From positions 694,718 through 728,794 of the forward strand of contig NC_069009.1 in NCBI RefSeq assembly GCF_001194135.2: a stretch of DNA of 34,077 nt, in the 5' to 3' direction. The notes beneath the pieces were generated by a model. That model was not told the origin of the DNA. It saw only the letters and a list, made by a program, of their open reading frames with translations, and made no database searches. Positions 1 through 21,381 of the stretch are shown here, one piece after another (position 1 is the first letter of the stretch; the number at the start of each line of letters is the position of its first letter). The stretch is from Octopus bimaculoides (lineage: Eukaryota). The position numbers and the translations under genes were made by a program.

Positions 1-452
1 CATATTCAATGCTTAAAACTACAAAATGTGTTGTTTACTCATTTTTTCCTATATTAAATGCTTATTGAATTCCCATATTGAATGCTTAAAACTACAAAAT
101 GTGTTGTTTACTCTTTTTTATTCATATTAAATGCATATTTGCATAGCAAGTGACCTGATCTGAGATCGTATGCTGGAACGAAAGACACAAAAGTCGTTAG
201 ATTCACTTCAACATTTAAATTTAATGCAGCACGGAATTTTGTCAGTGAACAGGTCGCGGTCTCAAAGCGACGAAAATATTTTGACAAATTAAATTTAAAT
301 GTTGAAGTGAATCTAACAATTTTTGTGTTTTTCGTAAGTGGCTTATAAACACTTTCCACGCTGCAATTGTTAAATGCATATAGAATGCTTAAAAACTACA
401 AAATGTGTTGTTTACTCATTTTTCCCATATTAAATGCATATTGAATGCTTAA
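1..452. repeat. ~70-bp tandem repeat (3 copies) interrupted by a ~230-bp insert containing a 47-bp inverted repeat
   Basis: aatgcttaaaactacaaaatgtgttgtttactc in copies at about 1-70, 74-140 and 378-452; inverted arms 179-225 and 288-334. Confidence 0.85.
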
Positions 453-719
453 CCCTTTTGATACAAACCAGGCTGAAACTGCCTCTGGCTCTATAGTACA
501 AATGTCTTGCTTTCAGGGGAAGGGGCCAGTTGATTACATCAACCCCAGTACTTAACTGGTACTTATTTTATTGATCATGAGAGGACAAAGTCAACCTTGA
601 CAGAATTTGAACTCAGAACATAAAGACAGATGAAACACCGAAAAGCATTTAGCCTGGCATGCTAACAATTCTGCCAGCTCCCTGCCTTATAATCCTATGT
701 ATGCATGTATACATATAAT

Positions 720-945
720 CCTATGTGTGCATGCCTTTGTGTCTGTGTTTGTCCCCCACCACCATTTAACTGGTGCTGGTATGTTTACATCCCTGTAACA
801 AAGCAGTTTGTAAAAGGAGACTGATAGAATAAGTTAGAGGCTTAAAAAAAATAAGTCTGACTTATTTTTTAAAATTGTTTCACTGAAATTCTTCAAAGCG
901 TGTCCCAGCATGGCCACAGTCAAATTTAGAACAAATAAAAGAGAA
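720..945 (+). mobile_element. SINE family 1, 3' portion
   Basis: tgtccccca..gtaac..gatagaataag..ccagcatggccacagtcaaat..acaaataaaagag matches other copies in the window. Confidence 0.7.
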
Positions 946-1269
946 AAAAACATTTCATATTAGCGGAATGTATCATGTGACTGCTGCCACTCTCCAATAA
1001 CTACAAAATGTCACATACAAACAAAACAAATATATATATATATATTTATTATTCAATCAACAGAAGTTACAAAATATGTATATAAACACTCATGTTTTGA
1101 GTTCTGTTTTCCTATTTGTGCCACAAAATCAAATAAATATGGTATACAATATATCTTTCTCTTCATCATCGTCGTTTAACGTTGGCTTTCCATGCTAGCA
1201 TGGGTTGGACGATTGACTGAGGACTGGTGGACCAGGAGGCGACACCAGGCTCCAATGCAGAATTAATGC

Positions 1270-2347
1270 ATGATGGCAGCTCCTACAGTGGATTTTGGTA
1301 AAATTGAAACACACGAAGTTCCTCTTTTGCAAGGCGAAGGGAGCTGCGGAAATCCATGATGGGATGAAGGCAGTCTTGAACGATGGCTGCCCATCTTACT
1401 CCACAGTGAAGATATGGATGTCAAGGTTCTGGACTGGTCGTTTTGAGGTCATAGACGAACCCTGATCAAGATGGCCAACTTCTATATTACAGAGGACAAA
1501 GGCGACACTGTACACATCATGATTCTTGACGAGTGCTGGATTTCAGCTAAAGTCATAGCTGTGACAGGATTTCCCCACAAAAGTTTTGGCCACCTCATCC
1601 ACAGCATCCTGGACACAAAGCTTCCCGCAAAATAGGTGCTGAAATGCCTGAACACAGATCGGAAGCGCATCAGAGTGTTGACATCAAAGGTGATTTTGGA
1701 CCAGTTTGCAGCAAGAGAGGTTGACTTTATGGCTTGTTTAGTCACCATGAATGAAGCTTAGCTTCATCATTATGAACTCCAGACGGACGAACCCCAGACC
1801 AAGCAGCATTCAATGGAGTAATCGTCACAAAACCTTCACTGTGTCCCCAAGAAGTTCCATGTTCAGAAGTCAGCTGGTCAGATTCTGGCTTCAGCGTTCT
1901 GGGACAAAGAAGGACTACACCTCATAAAGTACCTGCTAACGAGTTGCACAATCAACACTGAATACTACAAGTCTCTGTTGCACAAACTGTGAAGCTTTGA
2001 AGATGAGATGTGGCATCCTGTTTTTGCCGGACAATGCTTTAGCACACGCAGCATATGAGACTCTATGGAAAATACCAACTTTGGCTTTGAATTGGTAGAT
2101 CATCCATCTTATTCTCCTGACTTGGCCCTCTTCAACTATCACCTCTTTCCAGAACTGAAGAAACATCTTAAGGGAATGAAATTTCACTCCAATTCAGAAG
2201 TGATCGCTGCTACAGGGGGCGGGGACCCCACCTTTTGAGTTCTTTTACAGGGATTAGAAAAACTGAGATGGGAATATGTTGCATAAAATCCTAATTAACT
2301 GATCCTCCCATATTTTCTAAGTTAGGAACTGTCCAGGAACCCCCTTG
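1270..2347 (+). mobile_element. Decayed mariner (D,D34D) DNA transposon
   Basis: Broken frames read HTH segment AAEIHDGMKAV..SYSTVKIWMSRF..G..DEP, a degraded WVPK-type segment, VTMNEA*LHHYE, QKSAGQILASAFWD, DNALAH and GFELVDHPSYSPDLALFNYHLFPELKKHLKG. Probable right TIR at about 2318-2347; left TIR not found. Confidence 0.9.
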
Positions 2348-2412
2348 TGCATGTGTGTGTGTGCATATATATACATACGCAGATTAAATAGACAGACAGA
2401 TAAACATATTAT

Positions 2413-2640
2413 CCTCATTTTAAGGTCCTCTTTCCTATGCTTGCATGTGCCAGGGTTTATTGAGCAGATTTTCTGCAGTTGGATGCTTTTCCTGTCCCCA
2501 ACCCTCAACTATTTCCAAAGAAAGGTAATACTTCCTCCATGACCAACCACGTTCTTTTGCAGAATATTGGAAATGAACGACACTGCTTGTATGACAGGGA
2601 TTCTCATTTACAACTATCATGCGATGTCAAGTAAAGAACA
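2413..2640. mobile_element. Dispersed interspersed repeat (retroposon-like); copies at 9250-9490, 11101-11330 and 19605-19845, with related heads at 1163-1255 and 30905-30951
   Basis: Shared motifs tttaa.gt.cact/gcttttccatg.t.gcatgg, ggatgc.c.tcc, aaggtaatatttc..catgg, atgtcaag. Family and strand not determined. Confidence 0.7.
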
Positions 2641-2739
2641 CACACACACACACACACCCATTCCTGTATATTTGTGTGTAGTTAAGTATTTATTTCACAA
2701 AAAAAAAAAAAATTTACCATAGAAATCACAGATATGGGG

Positions 2740-2804
2740 TTTTACACCTGTATGAATAGATGAATGGTTAAGAAAGATTCCCCACAGATATCACAAAGAT
2801 ATGG
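2740..2804 (-). pseudogene. Finger remnant downstream of the A1 stop
   Basis: After TAA the frame reads PYLCDICG, followed by a deleted finger and attcatacaggtgtaaaaccc. Confidence 0.7.
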
Positions 2805-3485
2805 TTATCCTGTATGAATACGTATGTGTTTAGTTAATTGAGCACTTTGAGAAAATGATTCAGTACAAATATCACAGTGATATGGTTTTTCTTCTGTGTG
2901 GGTAGCCTTATGTTTAGTAAGGCTGCTACTCTGAGAGAAGGATTTACTACAAATATCACAGTGATATGGTTTTTCGCCTGTGTGAATGCGTATGTGTTTA
3001 GTGAGATGAATACTTTGAGAGAATGATTCCCCACAGGTGTCACAGTGATATGGTTTCTCTCCGGTATGAATGCGTTGGTGTGTAACTAATTTATGCTTTT
3101 GAGAGAATGGTTTATCACAGATATCACAAACATAAGGTTTTTCTCCAGTATGGATACGTTGGTGAGTAATCAGGTTACCTTTTAGAGAAAATGCCTCACC
3201 ACAGATGTGACAAGGATATGGTTTTTCCCCTGTATGGATACGTTTGTGAATGATTAAGTTACCCTTTTGCGAGAATGATTTACCACAGATATCACAGCAA
3301 TATGGCCTCTCTCCTGTATGAATAGATTTATGTTTAGTCAGTTTACAATTTTGGGAAAACGATTTACCACAGACATCACAATTAAATGAAGTTCTTCCTT
3401 TCTCATTCTTCAAGTCATCGGGTAAAACAATACTTTTAGCCAATATTTTACGAGCAACATTGTTCTCACTAATCTCACTTTCCAT
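2805..3485 (-). CDS. C2H2 zinc-finger protein, type A (A1), 7 fingers, 226 aa
   Basis: 33-aa leader plus 7 tandem CxxC-x12-HxxxH fingers with TGEKP-type linkers; the stop interrupts the last linker (TG*). No KRAB/SCAN/ZAD/BTB domain recognisable. Confidence 0.92.
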
Positions 3486-4230
3486 CAGTTTTTGTTTTTT
3501 TTTCTTACTACAATATATACTAGTTTTGTTCTATTTTACTCTGAGCAAATATCACTGCTGCTATATTTCCATCAGCTGTGAATTTTGATGATTATCTGAA
3601 GTTGCTGCAGACTCATTTGTAATCCAAAGTTCAATTAAAATGCAAAATCAGTTTGTAAACTTTTCAAGCAGTGAAGAAAAATATTTCTCTCAGTTTTAAA
3701 GAGATATTTATCAGAAATTCAACTATAGATTTATATAAACAGGGTTATATCCATTCTGTGAATTTTGATGATTATCTGAAGTTGCTGCAGACTCATTTGT
3801 AATAAATATTGGTGATGCATCAGAAGCAAACAATTCTTTGCTGTTTCTGATATTCTGAAATGAAAGAAATAAGAATTTAAGATACAGAGACTACTTAAGA
3901 CAAAAAGGTAGAACAACAGAAATTTTACATTTTAATAAAGAAAAATTGTAGATGCATAACAAAAATATTTTTTGGATTCGGATTGGTGGCAGCACACTTA
4001 TGCCCAAAATAGACTACTTATACAAGTATTACCATGATAATAATAATGTGGTAATTCTAAATTCAAATTACGACAAACGTAAATAAACAAACGAAGTTTG
4101 CTTTTAGAAGCGTTGAGATGTCTTTTAGAAAGTTAAAAAAGTGATTTTAAATTCTCACTCGCAGAATAATGCTAATAATATAGCCTGAACAGGATAAACT
4201 ATCCCTATTTTGCAGAGAAAAGTGTAGGTG

Positions 4231-4303
4231 GCTAGCTGTGGACTCGAACTCACATCCCCGTGATTACATGTCACGATGCTTTGACCGATTAAGCTAAACT
4301 ACC
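4231..4303 (-). pseudogene. Degenerate tRNA-Thr(UGU)-like sequence (pseudo-tRNA or SINE head)
   Basis: On -: acceptor GGTAGTT/AGCTAGC (6/7 pairs), D-arm GCTT/AAGC, anticodon arm CGTGA-CATGTAA-TCACG (TGT, but A at position 33), T-loop GTTCGAGT with a defective T-stem. Confidence 0.6.
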
Positions 4304-4625
4304 CACTACAAATTCCTCTGCAAATTAAGATATATAAATCTCGCTTTATGAGACGCTCTCATATGTTAAATTCAAATTACGACAAACGTAAGTAAACAAA
4401 CGAAGTTTGCTTTTAGAAGCGTTGAGATGTCTTTTAGAGAGAGACTCGGAAATTATCTATTACACCAAAATTTATACGTTCTTCAGATTTTTATGCTTTG
4501 AGATTATGAAGATTAAGATTACACATCACAAGAATATGTTTTGAAATTTGATTTATTTTAATTTTTGTCTCCACCTTTTTTTCCATAACTTTCCACCCTT
4601 GCCCTTTTTTGTGAAATTCTTTTCA

Positions 4626-4954
4626 GGGGCGTGGTTATATGGTAAGAAGCTTGCTTACCAATGGCCTGGTTCCAGGTTCAGTCCCACTGTCTGACACCTT
4701 CGACATGTGTTTCTCTACTATGGCTTCATGCTGACCAAAGCCTTGTGAGTAGATTTGGTAGACGGAAACTGAAAGAAGCCCACCATATATGTATATAGCT
4801 ATGTGTGTGTGTGTGTGCATCTTTGTATCAGTCTTTGTCCCCACCCCCACCCCCACCACTTAACAACCAGTGTTGGTGTTTTTATGTTCCCGTAACTTAG
4901 CAGTCTGGCAAAAGGAACCAATAGAATAAGTATCCAGATTAAAAAAATAAAAAT
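4626..4954 (+). mobile_element. tRNA-derived SINE, family 1, near full-length copy
   Basis: A/B-box-like head (tggttatatggtaag..ggttcagtccc), central (TG)n and a 3' body recurring at 720-945, 9563-9705 and 15695-15868. Head or body fragments at 5375-5408 and 20340-20470 (+), and 11035-11095, 11345-11470, 19860-19980, 20085-20220, 21920-21980, 25890-25980 and 26445-26490 (-). Confidence 0.8.
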
Positions 4955-5234
4955 NNNNNNNNNNNNNNNNNNNNNNNNNNNNNNNNNNNNNNNNNNNNNN
5001 NNNNNNNNNNNNNNNNNNNNNNNNNNNNNNNNNNNNNNNNNNNNNNNNNNNNNNNNNNNNNNNNNNNNNNNNNNNNNNNNNNNNNNNNNNNNNNNNNNNN
5101 NNNNNNNNNNNNNNNNNNNNNNNNNNNNNNNNNNNNNNNNNNNNNNNNNNNNNNNNNNNNNNNNNNNNNNNNNNNNNNNNNNNNNNNNNNNNNNNNNNNN
5201 NNNNNNNNNNNNNNNNNNNNNNNNNNNNNNNNNN
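4955..5234. other. Assembly gap (others about 9737-9817, 18062-18664, 18983-19125, 21382-21917, 27072-27190, 30952-31051, 31834-32520)
   Basis: Runs of N; ORF-track frames across them are not informative. Confidence 0.99.
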
Positions 5235-6202
5235 AATTATATCAGAATTTAATGAGAAAATGGTAAAAGAAGAAAAGATGGTGGTGGTGGTGGTGGTGGT
5301 GGTGGGGGGGGGGTAGAGTGTTCCACCTTTTCCCCCCTCTGGGGATAAATGAATACTTTTTTTTAAAGAAAAAGGCGCAGCAGTGGCTGTGTGGTAAGTA
5401 GCTTTTGCTTATGAGGAAACAAAGCCGTCTCGTGTGAATTTTCCGAAACTCCTTTCAACCCACAGGAAAAAAATGTTCACAACAAATTCCAATATAGTCG
5501 TAATCTACACAATCTGAAGCGTATTTATAGAAACATTCATTAAAAGATATCAATTTTACTGGATGTTATGAGGCAACATAATCAGACAGCAAATCAAAAT
5601 TCCATAAATACAATCTGTAATTCTGTAGACTCGAATGGAAAAATGTATCGCTGAAGGACTTCAGTTTGAACAATTTTTATGTTTCATATTTACATCGTTT
5701 TATTAAATCCATTCAGTTGTTAAGCATAAATAAATCCTGGAATTAAAACTATATACTGTCAGGCGGCTTTTGGCCAACCCTATATATGTGGAGTTATGCC
5801 ATTTTATTAAAAATATCTATTCAAGATATTCCAAAAGCAAAGCGTGGTTACAGCCACAATCCTTAAGAATAATTTTTTTCCCGGACTTAACTCTAATCTG
5901 TATCATAAAAAATCTATGAGGAAACAAAGTCGAAACACGTGAAATATCCCTCACCCAACATGTTTTTCTTTGTTTATTTTTCCCACATTGTGTTATAATC
6001 GTAACCTCGATCGTCTGAAAATTATCAGTGGAACATCCCATTATAAAACACTCATTTTAATTAAACTTATGAGGAAACAAAGACAGTGGGAGGGGCAACT
6101 TGTGTAATTATACCGGACTTAATACCGGTAACAAAAAGTTTTCGATTACCCGATGTTCACCTTAATGTTTACTAAACAACATATATATTATATATACCTT
6201 AC

Positions 6203-6887
6203 CTGTTGTTGCTGTATAAAACCAGTGTTTACTGTAAAATATATTTAGTTATTACGACGCGATCTCACGAAGCCATGACCGGAAACAGGAAGTCCGTGTC
6301 ATGTGACTTCTCACTAACGAATAAAATCACAAAGCTTCTCATAAAACCAAAACTATATGAACTGCTGTGTGTGTATATATATATATATATATATAAATAA
6401 ATGAATAAATATATATATGGGTTGAAAAGTTGGGGGCACTGGGAAACCTCTCTAATGTATCCCCGTCTCAAGTATTCTGGGGGATCGGACCAGTTTAGTT
6501 GATTATCTGGCAGTGCCAACGGTTGCTTCTCTTTCACACGTCTTAGAGACTCAGTCACGCGGAACGAGGGAGGATAGGGAAGAGAGGAGGCGCTTAAAAG
6601 AAATGACAAAGCAAGCTGTCACGCTTAAACGCGTAAAGTTGTGGATGTTGTCACTTATGAGTGTCAGAATATTGGCAGAATGAAATGTGGCTTTTCAGTA
6701 AATTATGCCGGTGTTTATTGAGAGAGGGAAAAAATTGTGAATGACACCGGTGTATATTTCAGACAGGGGGAATTTGTCAATGGAGGAGTATCACCTACGT
6801 TACTGCTAATTAGTCTCTAATTAGTTCAGCTAATATAATTATAACGTGTAGTAATTATGTTACGTTAATGTTAGTGGATGATATCGG
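6203..6887. promoter_or_regulatory. Putative bidirectional promoter between A1 exon 1 (-) and B1 exon 1 (+)
   Basis: Outward-facing donors CAG|GTAAGG on - (exon ends 6203) and CGG|GTGAGT on + (exon ends 6887). Visibly CpG-richer than its flanks, with GGAAGT (ETS-like) and CATGTGAC motifs. Both halves are conserved at the other cassettes. Confidence 0.6.
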
Positions 6888-7621
6888 GTGAGTTACATAT
6901 TTCAAAGTCGGCGTTCCATCCCTTTAATTATTTATCATTTCGTCTGCAGACCACATCGTTAATTGTTTTTTTTCTTGATTTATTTACTCAAGATCAGGAC
7001 AGAGGAGGATCCATTCTAATTACCAACAAATGAGGGAATAGGTTTCCTGACCCTGCTTGACTTAAAAAAAAAAAAAAAAAGAAATACAACAAAACACAGG
7101 GACTTTTCTTTTATCTGCAGTGCACAGTATAAATGCGTACATACACGCATACAAAGGCACATATATATATACATATCATTTATTAGGCATCTACTTGTGT
7201 ACATATACACATTTTCTTTTATCTTACACTGCCGTATTGATAATGCAGAAATTATAAGTCTTTTCGCCTACAAGAGTCTGTTTTTGTATGGAAATTGGAA
7301 AGGACTTTAAACTCTTATGGTGAGTTAACCATTAGAAAACAGTTTATAGCAGAGACTCCATCTAAGAATATCTGAAGAAGGAATTGTAATTCCGAAATAT
7401 CATCGGACTATAGATAACTAAATTACAACAGGTATATAATCCATTTTTTTATATTATAGTGCATTGTTGTACCATTCAAAAAGTTTTATTCTTTATAAAA
7501 AAATATATAATTTCCACACTTGTAAGCCGAAATCCACGATTCACGACTAAAAGCTAAACCGTCAGAGATAATATTTGAAGACATTTCTCAGATTTCTGTC
7601 TCAGATTCCTGAAGAATTGAT

Positions 7622-8683
7622 ATGGAAAACGTTAAGGACTTGGACACTTCTACCACAACTAATTTTACCGATGTAGATTCAGCAGCATCGACAGACAGAG
7701 ACGAGAAACCTTTATGGAGTGAAATATTTATTAATCAAGCATCAGTAATTGAACCTATTCCTGAATATTGCTGTGAGATTTGTGGGAAAACATTCAATTC
7801 AGAACAGGATTTCTTCACGCATAAAGACGCACACAATAAGGAAAAACCATTCCATTGTGAAATATGTGGGAAATATTTTGCATATAACAGTTATTTTATA
7901 AGCCATCAAAGAATCCACACTGGAGAAAAGCCGTATCATTGCGAAATATGTGAGAAATCTTTCACTCAGAATTCTCATCTTGTTATCCACATACGTAGTC
8001 ATACAGGGGAGAAACTATTTCATTGTGAAATATGTAATAAATCATTTGTCTCCAACAGTAATTTAACAAAGCATAGGAGAATACATACTGGAGAAAAGAA
8101 CTTCCATTGTGAAGTCTGTGCGAAAGCATTTGGTACTAACAGTGATTTAATCAGGCACAGAAGGATACACACTGGAGAAAAACCATACCACTGTGACATA
8201 TGTGGGAAATCGTTTACTCAAAATTCTTGCCTTGTTATTCACACTCGTAGCCATTCTGGATTAAAACCATATCACTGTGAAGTGTGTGGGAAATCTTTTG
8301 TGGATAATAGTAATCTAAACAGACACAGACAAACACACGCTAAAGAAAAACTGTTCAACTGTAAAACTGTGGTAGAGACTAAGCCTTTTAACTCTGAAAC
8401 TTCTGTAGAAGCTAAGACTTTTAACTTTGAAACTTCGGTAGAGACTAAGCCTTTTATCTCTGAGACTTTGGTGGAGGCTAAGCCTTCAAACTGTGAAACT
8501 TTGGTGGAGGCTAAGCCTTCAAACTGTGAAACTTTGGTAGAAGCTAAGCCTTTTAACCGTGAAACTTTGGTAGAGGCTAAGCCTTCAAACTGTGAAACTT
8601 TGGTAGAAGCTAAGGCTTTTAACTGTGAAACTTCGGTAGAAGCTAAGGCTTTTAACTGTGAAACTTCAAGTGAGGCTGTCTAA
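7622..8683 (+). CDS. C2H2 zinc-finger protein, type B (B1), 7 fingers plus 11-aa repeat tail, 353 aa
   Basis: Acidic leader, 7 C2H2 fingers (CEICGK type), then about 9 tandem copies of V-E-[AT]-K-[PAT]-[FS]-N-C-E-T-[LS]. Confidence 0.93.
   Translation: MENVKDLDTSTTTNFTDVDSAASTDRDEKPLWSEIFINQASVIEPIPEYCCEICGKTFNSEQDFFTHKDAHNKEKPFHCEICGKYFAYNSYFISHQRIHTGEKPYHCEICEKSFTQNSHLVIHIRSHTGEKLFHCEICNKSFVSNSNLTKHRRIHTGEKNFHCEVCAKAFGTNSDLIRHRRIHTGEKPYHCDICGKSFTQNSCLVIHTRSHSGLKPYHCEVCGKSFVDNSNLNRHRQTHAKEKLFNCKTVVETKPFNSETSVEAKTFNFETSVETKPFISETLVEAKPSNCETLVEAKPSNCETLVEAKPFNRETLVEAKPSNCETLVEAKAFNCETSVEAKAFNCETSSEAV
8342..8680 (+). repeat. Coding 33-bp minisatellite (about 9 units plus a proto-unit) in B1; paralog at 18768-18982+
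   Basis: Unit gtagaagctaagccttttaactgtgaaacttcg/ttg, with the frame preserved throughout. Confidence 0.95.
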
Positions 8684-9562
8684 TATATTTATAAAGAATG
8701 ACTTTCACTACAAAAGGAAGGGACCAACCACATTGACTCAATTTATGAATATATCATCATTATACATAACTGAGTACTGAGATTAATTAAACTGACTTAA
8801 TTACTATTCTATGATATATTTTATTGACACAAAACAGCACATCTTGGAAAATTTGTAGACATTCATTAATTGCACATGTTTTGTCTAATTAAGAATTTAT
8901 AAACAAATGGTGGTGCCTGTGTTTATTAAAATGAATTAAACTGACTTAATTATCATTTATGATATAAACTATTATGGTTAACATTTGAGGATTCCAGCAT
9001 ATAATTCCCATGCAGTCCCTTCTGTTTCATAAAGAAGATTGTTGTTACCTCTTTGATGTCTTTATCAATCTTTCTCTTATAAATTTAAACTCATTAGTTC
9101 GCCATGCATGCATTATAGAACATACGTCATGATGAATGAAGCTGAAGAAAGAAAAAGAAACCATTGTCTTTGAATTCTTGTAATCTATGAATCTAGTCTC
9201 TTTTGGGAGAAACATTTTCATTAAAGATTTGTGAATTATGAATTATAATTGTTTTAATGTTCACTTTTCCATGTTGGCATGGATCAAATGGAATTTGTTG
9301 AGACAGGTTTTCTTTGGTTGGATGCCCTCCCATCACACATTTTACATGCAAAGTAATATTTCTTCATGGTTGGTCACATTTCCATTGGCGGTTTGAAACA
9401 AACAGCCCTCACATTTTATATGGTGATACACATCTGCAACAATCACTTGTCATCAAGATGTGGAGACATGCACAAACGCACACACGTGCACCCCTCACCC
9501 CACAAGACGAGCTTCTTTTCATAAAGCTGGGCCTTATATGTAGCTGCTTAAATATGTGCCCC

Positions 9563-9700
9563 TTAATCTAGCGGTTCGGCAAAAGAGACCGATAGAATAA
9601 GTAGTACGCTTACAAAGAATAAGTCCTGGGGTTGATTTGTTCGACTAAATGCGGTGCTCCAGCATGTCCGCAGCCAAATGACCGACACAAATAAAAGAAT

Positions 9701-9705
<5 letters not shown>
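9563..9705 (+). mobile_element. SINE family 1, 3' portion
   Basis: tagcggttcggcaaaagagaccgatagaataagta..ccagcatg..caaatga..acaaataaaagaat, nearly matching 15750-15868. Confidence 0.8.
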
Positions 9706-9736
<31 letters not shown>

Positions 9737-10234
9737 NNNNNNNNNNNNNNNNNNNNNNNNNNNNNNNNNNNNNNNNNNNNNNNNNNNNNNNNNNNNNNNN
9801 NNNNNNNNNNNNNNNNNACCGAAATATAATAAATGATTTACAATTTGATTAATTAACTCCATAACATTGGTGCTAAATATGTAGCCTTTCTGCATTAACC
9901 GAAGTATTGTAATGAATCAGTGAATGACGATTTAATGAAACAAAGAATAATCGAGCAGGGTTTTGCAATTATGCGATTGCGAATACGACCAAAGCAATCC
10001 GGGAAAATACAAAATTTGACCTCGTCCCGAGTAAACGGAACGAATACATAAAATCGATTGAATGTCATTTATTGCAGATTTCTCCTTTTAATTTCTGAAC
10101 GGACTAATTACGGTTGTTCAATATACGGTGCACTTCAACTACTACACTATTTTTTTTTTCAATTTTTCCACCGGGTTACTTCATCATAATAATCATCATC
10201 GCTACAACGACCACTATTTAGGTAGGTATTAGAG

Positions 10235-10357
10235 ATTTGTGATTTTATTTGGTAGAGAAGAAACGAAACATGATTCATTTTACTTCCGTTTCCTTTATCG
10301 GTACGTCGTTATTTAAAAGTATTTAATTGCAAGCACTAGTTGAAATGGCAATAACAG
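10235..10357 (+). promoter_or_regulatory. Putative non-coding first exon / TSS region of A2
   Basis: Aligns with the reverse complement of 6203-6335 (gtgattttatt..tag.gagaag; acatga..acttcc.gtttcc; gcaa.aacag|gtaagg). Confidence 0.6.
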
Positions 10358-10695
10358 GTAAGGTGTATATATATATATATATATATATATCGATTAAAAT
10401 TAAGGTGTACATTAGGAATTGAAAACCTTTAGGTGTTGCTGCTTAGAGAGCGATATTAATTCCCAGCATTGATCGTCTGAAATCGATAATTAAATAGGTT
10501 TAATCAATAACAAGACAAATCAAGATCATTGGTTCTCGTCAATTTTTTGCCTAGGGATCCCTTCGTTCTCTATTTTACTCTACTGGACCTTCGCATTTTT
10601 TATAATGAAATATTATTAGGGGTTGTATTGTGTATTGTAGAAATATAAACAATAAATTTTACCAATATGATTGTATATGAACTAAGGGCCAAGCG

Positions 10696-11023
10696 TTTAA
10701 AATACGGACAGACCAAATTTTTTATTCATATCCCAGTATTTGACCATTAAATGTGTTTATTGGCAGAAGAATATTGAAAAACATCTATACGTCTTACAGA
10801 CAAACGAACGAGGACATTACGTGGGGGTTGTGAGATGTGCTAAACATAACAGCTAAATACTCCTTAAATCGCGCAGCAAATTTTTATTTTGCATATTCGT
10901 ATGAATTCCCTTGTGTTGAACGCAGATTCGCAGCAGTTGACCATTAAATGCATTTATGGGGAGAAAAATACGGAAGAACATTAATACGTCTGAATGACAA
11001 ATTTGGATTGTCTGTATTTTAAA
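10696..11023. mobile_element. MITE-like element with 25-bp terminal inverted repeats
   Basis: tttaaaatacggacagaccaaattt (10696-10720) versus the reverse complement of 10999-11023, tttaaaatacagacaatccaaattt (22/25). The internal part recurs at about 16267-16420. Confidence 0.5.
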
Positions 11024-11654
11024 CTCTGATTAATTAAACCCGGAACCATGTGTTGGGAAACAAGCTTCCTACCACACAGCCACGCCTGCACCTATATAAA
11101 TCATCGTCATTTAACATCCACTTTTTGATGCTTGCATGGGTCAGACGGAGATAATTGAGGCAGATTGTCTATGGCCAGGTGCCCCTCCTGTCACCAACAC
11201 TCATCTGTTTCCAAACAAGGTAATATTTCTCCATGGCCAAACTGGAAACAATGACGATGCTTGTATAACAGTGACAATCATTTTGCAACTATCACATAAT
11301 GTCAAGATATGGAGACACAAACATACGCACATATATACATATACATTTACTAAATCCATTTCACAAGGTTTTGGTCTGCCCAAGGCTGTAGTACAAGACA
11401 CTTATCCAATGTGCCAGTTAGTGGGACTGAACACAGAATCATATGGTTGGGAAGCAAACTTATTATACAACCATGCCTGTATCTTATATATACATTTTCA
11501 AACTGGAATGTAACAGTGGATAACTTAATTTATTCCAGTAAAATGCTTGGTTCTATTTAGTTTTACTTTATAAAAATGTAAAATTTCCATTGTTGTGTCT
11601 ATGATTGTTTAAATATTTTCTTTATTTAAATTTTTTGTTTCTCAATTATTTCAG

Positions 11655-11777
11655 AATATCAGAAACAGCAAAGAATTGTTTCTGTCAGATCTGTCACCAA
11701 TATTAACCATCTTTTCAAGACTAAAGGAAAATGTTACACAGAATGGATATATATATTCCTTTTTATATAGATCTATG
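11655..11777 (+). other. Putative internal 5' exon of A2 (homologs: A3 25615-25725 -, A1 3724-3854 -)
   Basis: Conserved acceptor atttcag|aatatcagaaac in all three type-A genes and donor ctatg|gtgaat in A2/A3 (ctata|gttgaa in A1). Confidence 0.6.
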
Positions 11778-12026
11778 GTGAATTAAAAATAAATATTTCT
11801 TTGGAACTGAGAGAAATATCAACATTTATTTTCTTCACTGCTTGAAAAATTTACAAACAGACTTTGCATTTTAATTAAACTTGGATTACAAAGGAATTTT
11901 GTAACAACCTCAGATAATCAAAATTTGGTGCTTATGGAAATATTGCAGCAGTAGTGTTTGTTAGGTATATAGTACAAGGACAAAAAGAGGAAAACTTGTG
12001 TCTGTTGTCGTAAGAAAACGAAAATT

Positions 12027-12800
12027 ATGGAAAATGAATTAATTGAGAACAAGGTTAAAAGTGAAATACAGAAGATTGACTTTTCTGATGATGTAAAGAA
12101 CGAGAAAGGAAAACCGTCATTTAATTGTGATATCTGTGGTAAATCGTTCTGCCGAAAAGGTAACATTACTAAACACAAACTTATTCATACAGGAGAAAAA
12201 CCATATCATTGTGATATCTGTGGTAAATCATTTTATCAAAGTGATCACTTAACTATTCACGTACGCATTCATACAGGGGAAAAGCCATATTTCTGTGATT
12301 TCTGTGGTAAATCATTCTCGGAGAATAGTTCTTTAACTAAACATAAACGTATTCATACTTTGGAAAAACCACATAATTGTGATTTCTGCGGTAAATCATT
12401 TTCTAATGGTGACGGTCTCACCAGACACAAACGAATTCATACGGGTGAGAAGCCACATCCCTGTGATATCTGTGGTAAACCATTCTCTCAAAGAGGTGAC
12501 TTAAGTAGACACAAATACATCCATGCAGAAGAGAAACCATATCATTGTGATATCTGTGGTAAGTCATTCTCTCAAAAAGGTAATTTAATTAAGCATAAAC
12601 GTATTCATACAGGAGAGAAACCATATCACTGTGATATCTGTGGTCAGTCATTCTGTGCAAGTTGTGACTTAACTATACACATACGTATTCATACAGGTGA
12701 GAAACCATATCACTGTGATATCTGTGGTAAGTCATTCTCTAAAAAAGCTACGCTGAACTCTCATAAAAATATTCATACAAGAGAGAAACACCTTGTGTGA
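12027..12800 (+). CDS. C2H2 zinc-finger protein, type A (A2), 8 fingers, 257 aa; truncated by a 2-bp deletion
   Basis: 31-aa leader homologous to A1/A3 and 8 intact fingers. The ORF ends after a 2-nt deletion in the linker (gagaaa-caccttg-tgtgat versus gagaaa-cgttacctg-tgtgat in A3); further finger DNA continues out of frame. Confidence 0.9.
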
Positions 12801-14110
12801 TGTGTGTGGTAAATCATTGTCTAATGATGGTTACTTAACACAAACACATCCATGCGATTGAGAAGCCATATCACTGTGATATTTGTGATAAATCATTCTC
12901 TGAAAGTAGTGGTTCAGACATGAACACATTCACACAGGGTAAATTCCATATCACAATGATATCTGTGAAGGACATATTCTTTCAAAGAAGAATCTTTACA
13001 AAACACAAGTGCACTCAAACAGGAGAAAAGCTATATCACTGCAATGTCTGTGATAAGTCATTCTCTGAAAATGGTGACTTAATTCAACCCAAACTTATTC
13101 ATACAGGAGAGTAACCATATCACTTCAATATCTGGTAAATCGTTTTCTGATGACAACCAATTAACTGAACACAAACACATTCATACAGGAGTAAAAATAT
13201 ATATCCCTGTGACATCTGTATTAAATCTTTATCTCATGGATATATATTAACTACTCGTAAAGGGGAGAAAAAAAAACCTTATCGTTATGATGAATCATCT
13301 GCTGAATCTTGGTCACTTAACTAAACCCAAGCATATTCATAGAGGAAACAATATTGTGACATCTGTTGCAAATTATTACCTCATGGATATAAGTTAACCA
13401 CTAACAAACACACATGCAAGGGAGAAACCTTATGACTATCACATCTGTGGTAAGTGCTTCACTAAAACTGGTCACGTAACTAAACACAAGCTAATTCATA
13501 TGGGAGAAAAGCAATATTGTGACATTTGTAGCAAATCATTATCTTATGGATAAATAATCATACAGGGGAAAATCCTATTCTTTGTGACGAATCCTTAACT
13601 AAACACTAGTTTATCCAAACATGAGACAACCCATATCATTGTGGCATCTGTTGTAAATTATTATCTCTAGGATATACTTCAACTTCTTATAGAAGGGAAA
13701 AAACCTTATCATTGTGACATCTGTGATGAATCCTTCACTGAAACTGGGGCCACTGAACTAAACTCAAACTCATTCAAACAGGACAGGAATCATATTTCTG
13801 TGATATCTAGCGATGCCTGCTGGGTTCGGCTGCTCTACATTGATAAGAGGCAATAATACCTTGAAACTAGTCTGTAGATGCCAGACCAGCAAGGGGAAGC
13901 GGCTGACCTCCCCTTGTTCGAAGGTTATAATGGACACAGGTTCGTGTGTGACATAGCTAGCTAGAGGCGATGGCCTCTTGGAGCTAATCAACGGCAGCAT
14001 TCGTCCTATTTTTTGGACTGCCATGTTGGCTTGGCGATAACTATTGATATGCTAAATCATTTTCTCAAAAACGATCCCTGACTGACCATATTGTTATTAA
14101 TATGCATCAA
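12801..14110 (+). pseudogene. Decayed C2H2 finger array downstream of the A2 stop
   Basis: Repeated tgtgatat/catatcactgt/aaatcattct/cattcatacagga motifs with frameshifts and stops, including SENGDLIQPKLIHTGE* (ending 13114) and a split finger reading AKSFSQKRSLTDH after 14050. Confidence 0.85.
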
Positions 14111-15224
14111 TAACTCTATCAAAATATAGGCTCATAATATACACAGTGCAACAAGCACTGCAAGTGTGATTACATTTAGTTGGGTTAACTGTTTCCTGTT
14201 TCTCATTTGTATAATTAATAATGTTATCATTATTGGTTATCTTTCATTGGAGTAGCCTAGAAGTTGTATAAATGTACTCTATACAAGAAAATATTAATAT
14301 TCATATTGATATTGATACATAAGGAGTGCAGTCAAACACGTTTCACTGGTTTTTTTTTTGTTGGTTTGTATATTTTGTTGCCCATATTCATTTTCTCGTT
14401 TTTGTTAGTAAATCTGTTAATATTAAGAATATTGCTATTTCAAAATACTCATCAAATTTGTTGGTATACTAATGAAATAAAAGAAAGAATTTGATGAACA
14501 AAAATGAAGTGTTGCATGTTATATCTTCCTTGTGTTTATCTCAATTGTTAGAATTGATTTTGTGGAAAATAAATTATATTAAGTGCATTCAATAAGTATC
14601 AGCCTTTATTTTTTTCCTGCCAAAGATAATGCCACTGGGGCAAAACCCTTTGGATGGAAGGTTTTTTTGTTGGTTTGTATATTCTGGATGGGAGGTGACA
14701 CCACCCTTCCTGTACATCAGATCCCTCGAAGCCCTGAAATGACCCATCGTCTGTGCACCAGAAATAGGATAGACCGTGAATTTGTGGGGCTGCTAGTTTT
14801 TGGTGCATACTTACATTGACTGTCGTATTTTAGACTGTAAAATACATAAGTAAAACAATATGGAAGTGAAAATGTGAAAGAGATGAGGTGAAGTCATGAA
14901 AAGACGAAAAAAAGGTTGATACTGAATGTAATAGGGGAAAAAATTATGTTTAAATTAAAATGTAATTTTCATTAATAAAACAAATTGCACTCAGAGTGGG
15001 AGCTGATGTCTGTTGGGGAGTGAAATGTTGCTGTGGTCAGTCTCTCAACTTCACAGGCCTTCATGGTTTATTTTGCCACCTAAAATGCTGGTCGTTTCAC
15101 TCATCAAACTAAGCTAAACTTAAATATTTAAGTGGACCTGGCTCAGGTAAAATATCCCCTCTGGTCTGGAGCTGGCAGGGTTAGCCAGAAATGATGGAAA
15201 GAGACTAGATGGACTTACCCTTTG

Positions 15225-15690
15225 ATCTTGGGTTTCTATGCCTGGATGCCCTTCCTAACACCAACCACTTCAAGAGTGTAGTAGGTGCTTTTTACGTGTC
15301 ACCAGCATAGGTGCCAGTTGCATGACACCAGCATCGGCCATGACTACGATCTTACTTAGCATGCTATTTTGCTAAAGGCCTTGATCACTTGTCTCTGCCT
15401 CTGTGAGGCTCAAGTTTTGAACAATGCCTTTTATGTGCCACCAACACAGGTGCCAGTCGCACGGCACTGGCATTGGCCATGACTACAATTTCGTTTGGCT
15501 TGGCAGGTCTTCTTAAGGATAGCACATCACCCAATGTTCAAAGGGTGCTTTTTATGTGCCAGTTAAGTGACACTGGCATTAGCCACAACTATGATCTCAC
15601 TTGGCTTGATGGGACTCCTCAAGCACAGCATATTGTCAAAGGTCTCGGTCACTTGCTATTACCTCTGTGAGGCTCAACATTCAAATATCA
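15225..15690. mobile_element. Retroposon-like repeat with internal tandem subunits
   Basis: ggatgcccttcctaacaccaaccac followed by three imperfect copies of gtgctttttatgtgccac..gtgccagt..cactggcatt.gcca.gactac.at. Confidence 0.6.
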
Positions 15691-15694
15691 TGTT

Positions 15695-15868
15695 TGTCCT
15701 CCCGACATCGCTTGACATCCGATGCTGGTGTGGTTACGTTCCCGTAACTTAGCGGTTCGGCAAAAAGATACCGATAGAATAAGTACTAGGCTTACAAAGA
15801 ACAGGGTCGACTAAAAGGTGTTGTTCCAGCATGGCCGTAATCAAATGACTGAAACAAATAAAAGAATA
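15695..15868 (+). mobile_element. SINE family 1, 3' portion
   Basis: Same 3' body as 9563-9705 and 4840-4954. Confidence 0.8.
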
Positions 15869-16024
15869 TGAAATTGGTATCATCTCTGGTGGAGGAATCA
15901 ATTTAGATATAGAATAATATTTGGTTCAAAACTGAGTTAGTGACAAAGCCTAGAAGTTGTCGCGAATGAGTAAATGTTGACCTGAAGAATATTATTCACA
16001 CGCTAACGATATTATATATCTTAC

Positions 16025-16940
16025 CAGTTATTGTTGCATAATCCACTGTTAACAGTGTAATATCTTTAATAATACTGGACAACCTATTAAAACCGCAAAC
16101 AGAAACAAACTGGTTCATGTGACTTTCCGTTTTTTTAATAAAGAAAATCACGAAACTGTTCACAAAAACGAAAATAGGTATACATTTTTTTGTGTGTGCC
16201 TGTAACCAATAAGTCTTCCTAGACGTCGCATCCCAGTAATAGAGCAGTCCTGGGAACATCGCCATTCTATTAAATGTGTTTATTGAAAAATCTCAATACG
16301 CCTGAGTCACAAAAAGACGAGGAAGTTATCAGGTAGTCATGAAATATGTTAAAAACAACAGCTAAATCACGGGAATCATATGAATTCCCGTATATAGAAC
16401 ACAAACTCGCAAAAACTTCCTGAAAATTCCAAAAAGTAAAAAGGAGTTACGAGGGCTTGTATGGGGTGCTTATATGACCAACTGACCGATGTCCATCGAA
16501 ACCCGAGCTTAGTGTAAAGAACTAGCAAGTTCGATTCTCTTCCTGCGAAGGGGAAATATTTCTGTTAATGATTTGCTTCTGGTTGATATGAAAATGGCAA
16601 ACGAAGAGAAAATCAGGGGGAATTTGCAAGGAATAGATCTATGGATATGGTTTGTCAAAAGGAATTTTGGGATTATCAAATGTCGGTTTTCAGTAAATTA
16701 TATTAGGGACATCTAACCCGCAATACCGTTGTATATTGAGACGGAAGAAAAAAGTAATGAACAACCCGACTGTATATTCGGACGGGAAAATCGTAAATGG
16801 CACCGGTTTCATTCAGACAACAACGAGAATTACCAACGTTACTGCGAAATAGTTTCTAATTAGTTCAGCTAATTTAATTATAACATTTACAGTAATTATG
16901 TCACGTTAAGGTAAACGTTAATGTTTGTGGACAATATCGG
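16025..16940. promoter_or_regulatory. Putative bidirectional promoter upstream of B2, with an orphan type-A first exon on -
   Basis: CTG|GTAAGA donor on - at 16025 with the gtgatttt..aagtcacatga..ctgttt.cgg block; CGG|GTGAGT donor on + at 16940; 16660-17000 is homologous to 6660-6990. Confidence 0.55.
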
Positions 16941-17519
16941 GTGAGTTACATATTTCAAGATCGGTGTTCCACCCCTTTAATTATTTATCATTTTATCTGC
17001 AAACCACATCGTTAATTGGTTTTTTTTCTTGATTTATTTACTCAAGATCAGGACAGAGGAAGATCCATTTTAATTACCAACAAATGAAGAAATAGGTTTC
17101 TTGCTGGACTTTTCAGTTGATTTTCAAATCAAACAGAAAAAAAAAGAAATACAACAGAACACAGGGACTTTTCTTTTATCCGCAGTGCACAGTATAAATG
17201 CGTACATACACGCATACAAAGGCACAAATATATATATATATACATATCATTTATTAGGCATCTACATGTGTATATGTACACATATTCTTTCATCTTACCG
17301 TATTGATAATGCAGAAATTATAAGTCTTTTCGCCTACAAGAATATATTTTTGTATGGAAATTGGAAAGGACTTAACAAAACGCTTATGGTGAGTAAAAGA
17401 TATATAATTTCCACACTTGTAAGCTGAAATCCACGATTCACGACTAAAAGCTAAACCATCAAAGAATATACTTCAAGACATTTCTCAAGATTTTTGTCTC
17501 AGATTCCTGAAGAATTGAT

Positions 17520-18982
17520 ATGGAAGACGTTAAGGACTTGGACACTTCTACCACAACTGATTTTACCGATGTAGATTCAGCAGCATCGATTGACAGAGAC
17601 GAGAAACCTTTATGGAGTGAAGTATTTATTAACCAAGCATCAATGATTGAAACTATTCCTGAATATTGCTGTGAGATTTGTGGGAAAACATTCAATTTAG
17701 AACAGGATTTCTTCACACATAAAGACGCACACAATAAGGAAAAACCATTCCATTGTGAAATATGTGGGAAATATTTTGCATATAACAGTTATTTTATTAG
17801 TCATCAAAGAATCCACACTGGAGAGAAGCCGTATCATTGCGAAATATGTGAGAAATCTTTCACTCAGAATTCTCATCTTGTTATCCACATACGTAGTCAT
17901 ACAGGGGAGAAACTATTTCATTGTGAGATATGTAATAAATCATTTGTCTCCAACAGTAATTTAACAAAACATAGGAGAATACACACCGGAGAAAAACCGT
18001 ATCATTGTGAAATATGCTTCAAGTCTTTTGTCTCAAATTGTAAATTAACAAGACACAAAAGNNNNNNNNNNNNNNNNNNNNNNNNNNNNNNNNNNNNNNN
18101 NNNNNNNNNNNNNNNNNNNNNNNNNNNNNNNNNNNNNNNNNNNNNNNNNNNNNNNNNNNNNNNNNNNNNNNNNNNNNNNNNNNNNNNNNNNNNNNNNNNN
18201 NNNNNNNNNNNNNNNNNNNNNNNNNNNNNNNNNNNNNNNNNNNNNNNNNNNNNNNNNNNNNNNNNNNNNNNNNNNNNNNNNNNNNNNNNNNNNNNNNNNN
18301 NNNNNNNNNNNNNNNNNNNNNNNNNNNNNNNNNNNNNNNNNNNNNNNNNNNNNNNNNNNNNNNNNNNNNNNNNNNNNNNNNNNNNNNNNNNNNNNNNNNN
18401 NNNNNNNNNNNNNNNNNNNNNNNNNNNNNNNNNNNNNNNNNNNNNNNNNNNNNNNNNNNNNNNNNNNNNNNNNNNNNNNNNNNNNNNNNNNNNNNNNNNN
18501 NNNNNNNNNNNNNNNNNNNNNNNNNNNNNNNNNNNNNNNNNNNNNNNNNNNNNNNNNNNNNNNNNNNNNNNNNNNNNNNNNNNNNNNNNNNNNNNNNNNN
18601 NNNNNNNNNNNNNNNNNNNNNNNNNNNNNNNNNNNNNNNNNNNNNNNNNNNNNNNNNNNNNNNNATATCACTGTGAAGTGTGTGGGAAATCTTTTGTGGA
18701 TAATAGTAATCTAAACAGACACAGACAAACACACGCTAAAGAAAAACTGTTCAACTGTAAAACTGTGGTAGAGACTAAGCCTTTTAACTCTGAAACTTCG
18801 GTAGAAGCCAAGCCTTTTATCTCTGAGACTTTGGTAGAGGCTAAGCCTTTAAACTGTGAAACTTCAGTAGAGACTAAGCCTTTTAGCCATGAAACTTCAG
18901 AAGAGGCTAAACCTTTTAACCGTGAAACTTCGGTAGAAGCTAAGCCTTTAAACTGTGAAACTTCTGTTGAAGCCAAGGCTTT
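17520..18982 (+). CDS. C2H2 zinc-finger protein, type B (B2), close paralog of B1; partly in assembly gaps, true end unknown
   Basis: First ~477 nt about 96% identical to B1 by manual count; 4 full fingers plus most of a 5th before gap 18062-18664; last finger (VDNSNLNRH) and at least 6 units of the 11-aa tail after it. The stop is probably in gap 18983-19125; the ORF-track end (ELITIL) is a gap artefact. Confidence 0.88.
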
Positions 18983-20509
18983 NNNNNNNNNNNNNNNNNN
19001 NNNNNNNNNNNNNNNNNNNNNNNNNNNNNNNNNNNNNNNNNNNNNNNNNNNNNNNNNNNNNNNNNNNNNNNNNNNNNNNNNNNNNNNNNNNNNNNNNNNN
19101 NNNNNNNNNNNNNNNNNNNNNNNNNCTGAGTTAATTACTATTCTATGATATATTTTATTGACACAAAACAGCACACCTTGGAATTTTTGTAGATATTTGT
19201 TAATTCTACCTGTGTAGTGTAATTAAAAATTTATAAGCAAATGATAGAGTTAGTGATTATTAAAATTTATTAAACTAAATTATTATTTCATAGTATAAAG
19301 AAAATAGAGCATCACAGTTCAGAATTGTGGCAAACATTTGGGGAATCCAGCATAGTTCCTATGTGGTCCCTTTCATTTTGTAAAGGAGATTGTTCATGTG
19401 CCTATTTGACATCTTTATCAATTTTTCTCATGTATTTAAACTCGAGTTCACCATGCATACACTGTAGAACATACGTCATGATCAATTATACTGAAAAAAA
19501 AACCCCATTGTCTTTGAATTCTTGTAGTCTACAAATGTAGTCTCATTTGGGAGAAACACTTTCATTAAAGATTTGTGAAATCCTTATTTGTGAATTATGA
19601 ATTTTTGTTGTTTTAATGTTCACTTTTCCATGTTGGCATGGGTTAAATGGAATTTGTTGAGACATGTTTTCTTTGGTTGGATGCCCTCCCATCACACATT
19701 TTACATGCAAAGTAATATTTCTTCATGGTTGGTCACATTTCCATTGGAAATTGAAAACAAACAACACCACATGTACAAAGGTGACACCTGTCTGCATCAA
19801 ACATGTGTCAAGATGTGGAGATGCACATGCATGCACACATACACACTCTCTTCCACCCACTAAATCAACTCACAAGGTTTGAGCTGACCCAAGGCCATAA
19901 TCCAAAGTGCCATACCCTAGGATTGAACCTAAAACCACACAGCTGGGTAGCAAACTACTTAACCATGAAACCATACCAACATTTATGCTCTCACACACAC
20001 ATGTGGTGGGCTTCCTTTCAGTTTCTGAGTTCAAATTCTGCCTCCCACCAAATTTCAGCCCTTGTGTCTGTAATAGGTTTATTATACTCCTTACCCAATC
20101 CACTCAGAAGGCTTGGGTTGGCCTGGCTCTACAGCCAAAGATATTCAATGTGCCATTCAGTAGGACTGAACCCAAAATCACAGGGTAACTGAGCAAACTT
20201 CTTAACCACACAACCTTGCCTATCTTAAATATAAGCAAGTACTGTATATACAGGAGGGGAAGTAGCGACATGGTTTCTTGAAAACATTGCAACCAGAAAT
20301 AAAAAGAAAGATGGGTCTTAATGAATCAATACAAGGAAACTGACAGCTGTATGGTTAACAAGCTTGCTTCCCAACCATCAGGTATCTGGTTCAGTCCTAC
20401 TGTGTGGCACCTTTGGCTAATCTTTTTTACAATAACCTTGGGCCTTGTGAGTGGACAGAATCTAAAAGAAGCTTTTTGAATATGTGTGGATATTATCAAG
20501 TATGTGTCC

Positions 20510-20810
20510 TCCCTGTATCCAGGGGTCAGCTTGTGATGATTCTCCAGTTCCCTTTGTGTTGTACTCCATGCAATTCGCCAGGTACTTCTTGTTTCCAGTC
20601 CATTCTTTGTTGCTGTCGGTCTGCAAAAGTGATGACCTCTTGTTCTCTTCCCCTCAACACTTCCTATTAGGATGGTCTTGGGTAGTCACACATTGTCCAT
20701 TTCATACTCAAAATATGATAGCATTCTGGACTTGATTCTCCAACTAAAGGTGTCTTTGCGCTTTTAGCTATTCTAATACTGCAACATTTGTTGCCCTGTC
20801 TTTCCAGGTT
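20510..20810 (-). mobile_element. RTE-clade LINE 3' fragment (second, duplicated copy about 20900-21110)
   Basis: Broken frames read TWKDRATNVAVLE, PKTILIGSVEGKRTRG and DSNKEWTG; the second copy reads IILQRMVDKKRAGG..DNIKEWTG. These are typical RTE ORF C-terminal motifs. Confidence 0.75.

Positions 20811-21332: not shown

Positions 21333-21381
<49 letters not shown>

Follow-up and report, generated by a model that had tools for sequence, protein, structure and literature searches.

Octopus genomes are said to carry lineage-specific expansions of C2H2 zinc-finger genes. In Octopus bimaculoides, C2H2 genes number about 1,450, and many belong to expansions specific to octopus or to the species (Albertin et al., 2022, PMC9068888; PMC12513265); the passages of PMC12513265 and PMC10547256 returned by a term search speak of neither C-terminal tails nor repeats derived from linkers. 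The closest described system is that of PRDM9-type zinc-finger minisatellites, in which 84-bp units in the last exon form in-frame, head-to-tail repeats at the 3' end of a C2H2 gene; these repeats gain and lose units and exchange sequence between them, and close copies differ (PMC3890296). Related phenomena are the terminal fingers of poly-ZNF genes, which decay in the 3' UTR, and the disordered tails born from slippage, which combine a short period, high identity between units, changes in copy number, predicted disorder, and weak constraint.

The window analyzed here, a stretch of 34,077 bp from O. bimaculoides, is identical base for base to positions 694,718-728,794 of chromosome CM046629.1 in GCA_001194135.2, the chromosome-scale genome of this species (Albertin et al., 2022). 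Its list of open reading frames contains three A-type and three B-type C2H2 genes, which lack KRAB, consist of single exons, and lie close together, as is typical of the poly-ZNF clusters of the octopus expansions. No further B-type gene was found in the 6 kb downstream of the window. In two of the B-type genes, B1 and B2, the fingers are followed by a tail of 33-bp repeats. We consider it rather likely that this tail is a coding minisatellite grown from the stub of a truncated last finger, and that it represents a probably nearly neutral extension of the reading frame in two young, intact paralogues.

The repeat arrays of B1 and B2

The genes of the cluster and the parts of the two arrays are as follows (position 1 is the first nucleotide of the window):

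2805-3485, minus strand: A-type ORF (ORF list)
7622..8683, plus strand: B1 gene, a single-exon ORF of 353 aa with an acidic N-terminus, seven C2H2 fingers, and the repeat tail (ORF list)
8270..8338, plus strand: finger 7 of B1, the last intact one (residues 217-239; best Pfam zf-C2H2 stretch)
8342..8374, plus strand: unit 0 of B1, a degenerate linker with the start of a truncated eighth finger, forming the transitional edge of the array (distance between the last His and the Cys)
8375..8671, plus strand: nine full 33-bp units of B1 with the consensus GAGGCTAAGCCTTTTAACTGTGAAACTTCGGTA, that is EAKPFNCETSV (TRF and frame reading)
8672..8683, plus strand: partial tenth unit GAGGCT, followed by a unique GTC and the stop codon TAA (sequence)
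12027-12800, plus strand: A-type ORF (ORF list)
17520..18061, plus strand: 5' part of the B2 gene with the N-terminus and fingers 1-4, followed by a gap of 603 N (ORF list and alignment to B1)
18738..18982, plus strand: tail of B2, consisting of unit 0, six complete units, and the initial 14 nt of the next (TRF and alignment to B1)
23861-25300, minus strand: A-type ORF (ORF list)
28343-29896: B3 ORF, B-type (ORF list)

B1 is a Krueppel-type C2H2 poly-zinc-finger protein (PF00096 / PF13465), to which Pfam assigns seven zf-C2H2 domains (E=6e-39) as well as zf-H2C2_2 (E=5e-47), and for which AF2 predicts seven β-β-α modules; the last of these, finger 7, is modeled as strand-strand-helix with a pLDDT of ~79. 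GCA_001194135.2 carries a gene call with exactly this 353-aa product, in a single coding exon that includes the tail, and the exact protein was located on one contig only. Degenerate fingers beyond the stop codon are the rule in this cluster: B3, A2, and A3 all trail off in this way.

In B1, the 84-bp finger periodicity detected by TRF ceases at ~8210, and from 8357 to 8666 the program detects a tandem array with a period of 33 bp, 9.4 copies, and 86% matches (score 417). The nine full units and one partial unit agree with the earlier note, which had read about nine in-frame units after the last finger. A search of the window with the consensus unit returns five copies at ≤3 mismatches, as against none in 100 shuffles, and finds none away from the array. 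Of the six reading frames, only that of the finger ORF and one antisense frame are open through the array, while the other four meet a stop in nearly every unit; the ORF closes 6 nt past the end of the array. Being head-to-tail, in frame, located within the CDS, and beyond chance, the array is a coding minisatellite by definition.

A second 33-bp array is found by TRF at 18753-18982, in B2, where it additionally shows a higher-order period of 99 bp, corresponding to three units. Unit 0 of B2 (18738-18770) is identical to that of B1 in 33/33 positions. The array is interrupted by an assembly gap (N, 18983-19125), and the number of units in B2, the end of the array, and the stop codon are therefore not seen. 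As the assembly is short-read, scaffolded later, and broken inside the B2 array, with eight N-runs across the 34 kb of the window, the unit counts may be wrong in either copy. The repeat tail of B1 and B2 is confirmed as a real feature. That B2 has the same tail as B1, as originally proposed, stands; that its units follow in a different order does not, the two arrays being collinear apart from insertions and deletions of whole units. No frameshift was seen in B2, the sole second copy compared.

Relation of the unit to finger DNA

Unit 0 sits where the linker and the next finger belong, and the spacing from the last His to its Cys is canonical (H-AKEKLFN-C, compared to H-TGEKPYx-C). For a quantitative comparison, an 84-column finger profile was derived from the 24 B-type fingers of the window, or from all 51 fingers, and the unit consensus was scored against it in 33 rotations and 84 offsets. 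The best of these 84x33 registers is the in-frame diagonal that the last finger sets a priori. Its score, taken as the maximum over all registers, is exceeded by 0.3-1% of shuffled units (P 0.003-0.01) and by 2.3% of real genomic 33-mers (P 0.023); taken in the a-priori register, it has a z of 4.5, and 0/1500 genomic 33-mers match the score of the unit, or even that of unit 0. The same diagonal is chosen by 12 of the 15 individual units.

In this register the finger reads K-P-F/Y-H-C-E-I-C-G-K-S, and the match of the unit is borne mainly by AAR-CCN-TTY-nAn-TGT-GAA-A. The likeness at the DNA level is modest (54-64%): compared to the 52 real finger starts in the window, the unit has a mean of 17.9/33 identities (54%) and a maximum of 21/33 (64%). 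Two proposals made from the sequence alone are upheld by these results, namely that the first unit is the start of an aborted finger, for which the canonical spacing and a unit 0 score beyond 1500/1500 genomic 33-mers speak, and that the DNA of the unit resembles that of a linker and first β-strand, which it does far above chance in the finger register. The 5' third of the unit (GTAGAGGCT) is left unexplained by the canonical linker. It may reflect the odd H-A-K of the terminal linker; we propose this source because GCTAAA precedes unit 0.

The units contain at most one Cys each and no His, except for one unit of B2, such that the four zinc ligands are not kept, and Pfam zinc-finger models give no match to the 115-aa tail at E≤1. 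The 3' flank of the array contains a weak candidate for the other half of the finger:

8795..8845, plus strand (orthologous place in B2 at 19129): possible decayed second finger half, ..RHK.IHTGE-like (profile score, weak)

At both of these paralogous sites the profile score lies ~2.8 sd above background; local alignment is not significant (15, as against 11.2 +/- 1.7 with a maximum of 18 in shuffles), and a remaining truncated finger downstream of the array is thus not established at 8795/19129.

A further trace of the unit lies behind B3, whose ORF lacks the tail, as had been noted; what had been overlooked is a single unit-like stub past its stop codon:

30716..30751, plus strand: stub HSGEKGFNPET followed by a stop codon, in which K-x-F-N-x-E-T comes after a canonical linker where a decayed finger ends (nhmmer and translation)

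This stub is the one extra match of an nhmmer search with the unit profile; the match is weak (30730-30747, E=0.039) and located ~830 bp past the B3 stop. In context, the translation runs from ...ICWK through a stop codon to FDSKRDLKRHQLHSGEKGFNPET and a second stop codon, that is, from a decayed finger into a canonical linker and K-x-F-N-x-E-T. The stub is identical to the unit consensus in 21/33 positions, and across 42 kb in six frames it is the only occurrence of K.FN.ET outside the two tails. A more distant paralogue therefore has the unusual F-N...E-T start of a finger once, preceded by a real linker. The stub was considered as the unexpanded orthologous state of the array; the homology of its flanks to those of B1, however, is not significant in local and multiple alignments. 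The stub therefore supports the origin of the unit from finger DNA, and does not prove a state prior to expansion.

The growth of the tail from a finger stub would have proceeded as follows. The last finger of the ancestral gene would have been cut short, leaving no more than the linker and the beginning of the β-hairpin (roughly K-P-F-N-C-E-T-...), and a 33-nt piece of this stub would have been duplicated in tandem, through replication slippage or unequal exchange. As 33 is divisible by three and the piece is free of stops, each extra unit would have made the reading frame longer by 11 residues. The array would have been present before the duplication that gave rise to B1 and B2 (dS about 0.1), after which whole units would have been gained or lost and the units partially homogenized within each copy.

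Turnover, constraint, and predicted product of the tail

Between B1 and B2, identity varies along the gene:

5' flank: 92.8%
initial 460 nt of the CDS: 96.5%
last finger and unit 0: 106/106
tail: 85.8%
3' flank: 85%

The tail has thus diverged on par with the 3' flank, as compared to 96.5-100% identity in the fingers. In the N-terminus and the fingers, dS is about 0.09-0.12. The distinctive units follow in the same order in both copies (FNSETSV; FISETLV; P[S/L]NCET; FNRET; P[S/L]NCET; EAKA...), with two differences: one unit is exclusive to B1, and one position is filled by very different units. Since the arrays are collinear and differ at the level of units, the array must be older than the duplication and have been altered by whole units since. 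Within B1, units 5 and 7 have the same sequence, from which unit 4 departs by 1 nt, the counterparts of all three in B2 being 3-5 nt away; non-adjacent units have copy-specific states in common, TCA and TTG in B1, TTA and TCN in B2; and the units at the edges are the most diverged, unit 0 differing from the other units in 10-17/33 nt. Near-identical units, copy-specific variants, and diverged edges are commonly left by unequal exchange or conversion in a tandem array, and may be read in this way here. The claim that the tail is turning over is thus borne out by whole-unit indels, homogenized units, and copy-specific variants, with change in unit number and homogenization observed between paralogues only.

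The substitutions point to weak constraint. The dN/dS between B1 and B2 is 0.03 in fingers 1-3, 0.67 in the N-terminus, and 0.29 in the tail (0.15 without the odd B2 unit); the dS of the tail, three times that of the fingers, is probably inflated by non-orthologous pairing of units and by CpG sites. Synonymous changes account for 12 of the 26 differences in the tail, compared to 7.2 expected at the ts/tv of the flank (P=0.027; P=0.004 with no ts bias), which hints at constraint on the protein level and argues against strict neutrality. At codon positions 1, 2, and 3, the variable columns of the unit number 4, 5, and 7, respectively. No column varies more than that of the former Cys (TGT/TCT/TTT/CGT/CAT, that is C/S/F/R/H), and the alternation of S and L is located on a CpG. 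The chance of having no stops is unremarkable, at 0.08-0.14 over all 15 units and 0.23-0.48 for the differences between B1 and B2, and indels preserve the frame automatically, as the unit has 33 bp. Judged from these patterns, the tail would be under weak constraint at most.

The product would be a tail of ~110 residues, acidic, containing Ser, Thr, and Pro, with its zinc ligands lost, and predicted to be disordered. In an AF2 model from the single sequence, which is a weak test, residues 243-353 are without secondary structure at a pLDDT of ~30, compared to 70-80 for the seven fingers. The composition of the tail is in keeping with this model: it has a net charge of -7, a pI of 4.7, and eight Phe residues, and E, T, K, A, V, and S are abundant; by prediction it has the features of acidic effector regions, namely disorder, negative charge, and interspersed bulky hydrophobic residues. 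The inverted SUMO consensus is [D/E]-x-K-ψ (Matic et al., 2010, as cited in PMC3395311). Six matches to [DE].K[VILFP] are found in the tail, all of them E-[AT]-K-P, next to 13 CK2-type S/T-x-x-D/E sites; the units with E-A-K-T and E-A-K-A have no such match. For E-x-K-P to qualify as an inverted site, Pro must be counted as hydrophobic in position ψ. There is no Pfam family for the tail, and a PDB sequence search with it returned no relative.

These properties invite the reading that the tail is a selected, functional, disordered module of effector or regulatory nature, either of the acidic-hydrophobic activation type or regulated by phosphorylation or SUMO, which offers a surface for the recruitment of cofactors and whose dose is set by the number of units. 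The fingers to which the tail is joined in frame evolve under strong purifying selection (dN/dS 0.03), the frame is open in both paralogues, and the synonymous excess (P=0.027-0.04) and a dN/dS of 0.15-0.29 suggest some constraint; the net charge of -7, the regular spacing of F/L/V, the 13 CK2-type sites and six [DE]xK[VILFP] sites, and the predicted disorder, which is typical of effector regions, would all suit such a role. However, only the skeleton E..K..E.T is fixed, the Cys column being the most variable and S and L alternating at a CpG; the tail has diverged as much as non-coding flank; and both the open frame and the in-frame indels follow automatically from a stop-free 33-bp unit. In addition, no homologous tail is found in 5.8 billion protein clusters, and no orthologue of the gene's N-terminus. 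We therefore regard the effector reading as unlikely. Of the functions envisaged in the earlier note, a Cys array is ruled out by the variability of the Cys codon, and an effector domain fares poorly with no homologue, no family, and predicted disorder; most likely the tail is tolerated or weakly constrained, rather than being a specific new effector. It is more doubtful still that, in a lineage-specific zinc-finger family of octopus, a finger fragment was amplified into a translated acidic disordered effector tail, tunable through its copy number; an effector domain would then have been born from finger DNA, with the unit at the transition and a precursor in single copy (the B3 stub) still to be seen.

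Equally doubtful is that the tail is absent from the mature protein, whether removed by splicing or located beyond an upstream poly(A) site or an alternative stop, or that its length and order are an artefact of assembly. The ORF shuts directly after the array, leaving the flank non-coding, each unit contains GGTAGA, a weak donor-like string, and the assembly breaks within the B2 array, with eight N-runs in 34 kb; against this, no stop codon separates the last finger from the array in B1 or B2, the public gene call covers the tail within its one coding exon of exactly 353 aa, and random misassembly would not yield these arrays, since two independent copies are collinear.

Repeats elsewhere and comparison with known systems

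A search of 5.8 billion protein clusters with the tail only gave no match at E≤0.01, and a search with the 75 N-terminal residues gave no relative; as neither the tail nor the N-terminus finds a relative, no annotated orthologue is in reach. By exact look-up, the window's own proteins are absent from the cluster collection. A search with the whole B1 protein returned generic vertebrate ZNFs, none of them covering the tail, and is uninformative. A HMMER scan of 1.84 billion representatives with the tail gave 56 matches; the 34 of these that were read are all unrelated low-complexity repeats, and the sources of about a dozen are scattered taxa (protists, fish, frogs, and gastropods among the top matches).

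Two of the matches, both 33-bp arrays, were traced to their DNA, and each is identical to the unit in 20/33 positions. One is a coding array of 68 units in a TACC-domain gene of the octopod Argonauta hians, with the unit VEAKPTDNVPV, which shares GTAGAGGCTAARCCT with the tail unit; the other is a degenerate, non-coding array of ~1 kb in three near-identical metagenome contigs, with the unit HEKPSDCETLL, which matches the tail unit EAKPSNCETLV in 7/11 residues at the protein level. As these arrays were picked by similarity from 1.84 billion proteins, a match of five to seven residues at a period of 11 is expected by chance. We consider both probable coincidences, as finger starts match the unit as well or better.

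On the strength of these two arrays, the tail could be seen as a member of a dispersed family of 33-bp minisatellites or repeats, captured at the 3' end of the ancestral B gene, with a coincidental likeness to the linker; this is the least probable of the readings, given that neither foreign unit fits the finger profile significantly (P=0.3 and 0.8 for Argonauta and metagenome, respectively) whereas the tail unit does, that real finger starts in the fixed register reach 21/33 identities, that the tails of B1 and B2 and the B3 stub are the only places of the unit in the surrounding 42 kb, and that a metagenome scan for the junction of units found nothing. A better match to an unrelated minisatellite than to finger DNA was thus not found, the other arrays reaching 20/33 as compared to up to 21/33 for finger starts.

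If the tail did grow from a finger stub, it would provide a clean and datable example of a low-complexity region that arose from part of a folded domain within its own gene, with the junction still visible in the edge unit and with turnover in two paralogues on the timescale of a dS of ~0.1. For now the case is a curiosity, consisting of two copies in one assembly of one species, with weak signs of constraint. As the expanded C2H2 genes have no KRAB-like effector, non-finger appendages that recur in cephalopod C2H2 expansions merit checks for activity.

With the PRDM9-type minisatellites, the octopus arrays share their place and orientation at the 3' end of a C2H2 gene, the gain and loss of units, and the exchange between them. 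Unlike these, the octopus unit is not a whole 84-bp finger; at 33 bp, it covers ~40% of one, comprising the K-P of the linker and the start of the β-hairpin, and, with the second Cys and both His lost, it can neither fold as a finger nor read DNA. Nor is there, in contrast to the PRDM9 type, any sign of positive selection at defined positions of the tail. Unit 0 resembles the decayed terminal fingers of poly-ZNF genes, being itself such a remnant, of the kind that also trails B3, A2, and A3; yet in B1 and B2 the remnant has not decayed in the 3' UTR, but has been amplified in frame and remains part of the ORF. The tail agrees with slippage-born disordered tails in all the properties listed for them above, and differs in that its unit can be traced to a structured domain of its own gene, from which a transitional unit is retained at the edge of the array.

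Finger number and upstream region of the B1 and B2 paralogues

In B1 and B2, the two B-type C2H2 genes that carry the 33-bp tail unit at their C-terminal end, fingers 1-3 are nearly identical; finger 4 of B2 (17982-18061), however, is unrelated to that of B1 (8084-8163; GEKNFHCEVCAKAFGTNSDLIRHR). The run of N at 18062-18664 in B2 comprises 603 N, against 105 nt in the corresponding stretch of B1, which suggests that B2 contains extra fingers and hence that the paralogues differ in finger number too. Upstream of the start codon, directly after the conserved string cttatgGTGAGT, the two genes are further distinguished by an indel of about 140 bp (7330-7470 in B1, 17385-17400 in B2), which may represent a 5'-UTR intron differing in length.

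A-type genes and their public annotation

In the A-type C2H2 gene A3, the 84-bp finger periodicity extends to 23411, beyond the end of the open reading frame at 23861, and this region (23397-23860, minus strand) includes a 119-aa open reading frame (23397-23756) with finger-like pieces in a different frame; together, these observations suggest that the 3' part of the A3 array is frameshifted or decayed. The public annotation places here a minus-strand model of 1078 aa, which runs from the A3 ATG (25300) to beyond the start of the window (<1..25300) and looks like several A-type zinc-finger ORFs fused into one. Its 'introns' enclose B1, the A-type ORF A2, and B2.

Mobile-element-like sequences, a candidate tRNA and a tandem repeat among the genes

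The window further contains the following elements:

4227-4304, minus strand: candidate tRNA-Thr, anticodon TGT, either a gene or a tRNA-derived repeat (ARAGORN; Rfam tRNA, 31.9 bits)
22343-22694: AT-rich, intergenic tandem repeat of 153 bp, 2.3 copies, 91% matches
30296-30660: SINE-like insert, some 365 bp long, which opens with a sequence resembling a tRNA head (ggcgcaatggcccagtggttagggc)
31626-32738, minus strand: remnant of a transposase of the Mos1/mariner type (Pfam HTH_48, E=1e-21)

The candidate tRNA-Thr sits among the zinc-finger genes, and the transposase remnant is split by an assembly gap of 687 N. The insert at 30296-30660, which from its sequence looks like a SINE, lies downstream of the B-type gene B3 and is flanked by two copies of a decayed-finger segment of about 135 bp (30160-30295 and 30660-30830); neither ARAGORN nor Rfam found a tRNA in it.

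Arrays of 33-bp units elsewhere

Two further 33-bp arrays were compared:

Argonauta hians, BAAFZT010000027.1 locus, 3685-5957 of the extracted stretch: coding minisatellite of 68 units x 33 bp, VEAKPTDNVPV
Contig from JGI metagenome 3300042108, 1200-2265: degenerate, non-coding 33-bp repeats over about 1 kb, CATGAAAAGCCTAGTGATTGTGAGACTTTGCTC, reading HEKPSDCETLL

The HEKPSDCETLL repeat contigs come from three samples, have 38% GC and are 99.5% identical; in a blastn comparison of this array with the window, the top matches are linker/first-strand segments of the zinc-finger genes (20/22). The host gene of the Argonauta array, annotated as 'serine/arginine repetitive matrix protein 2-like', has a TACC_C domain, and GTAGAGGCTAARCCT is common to this array and the tail unit of the octopus genes (consensus EAKPFNCETSV).
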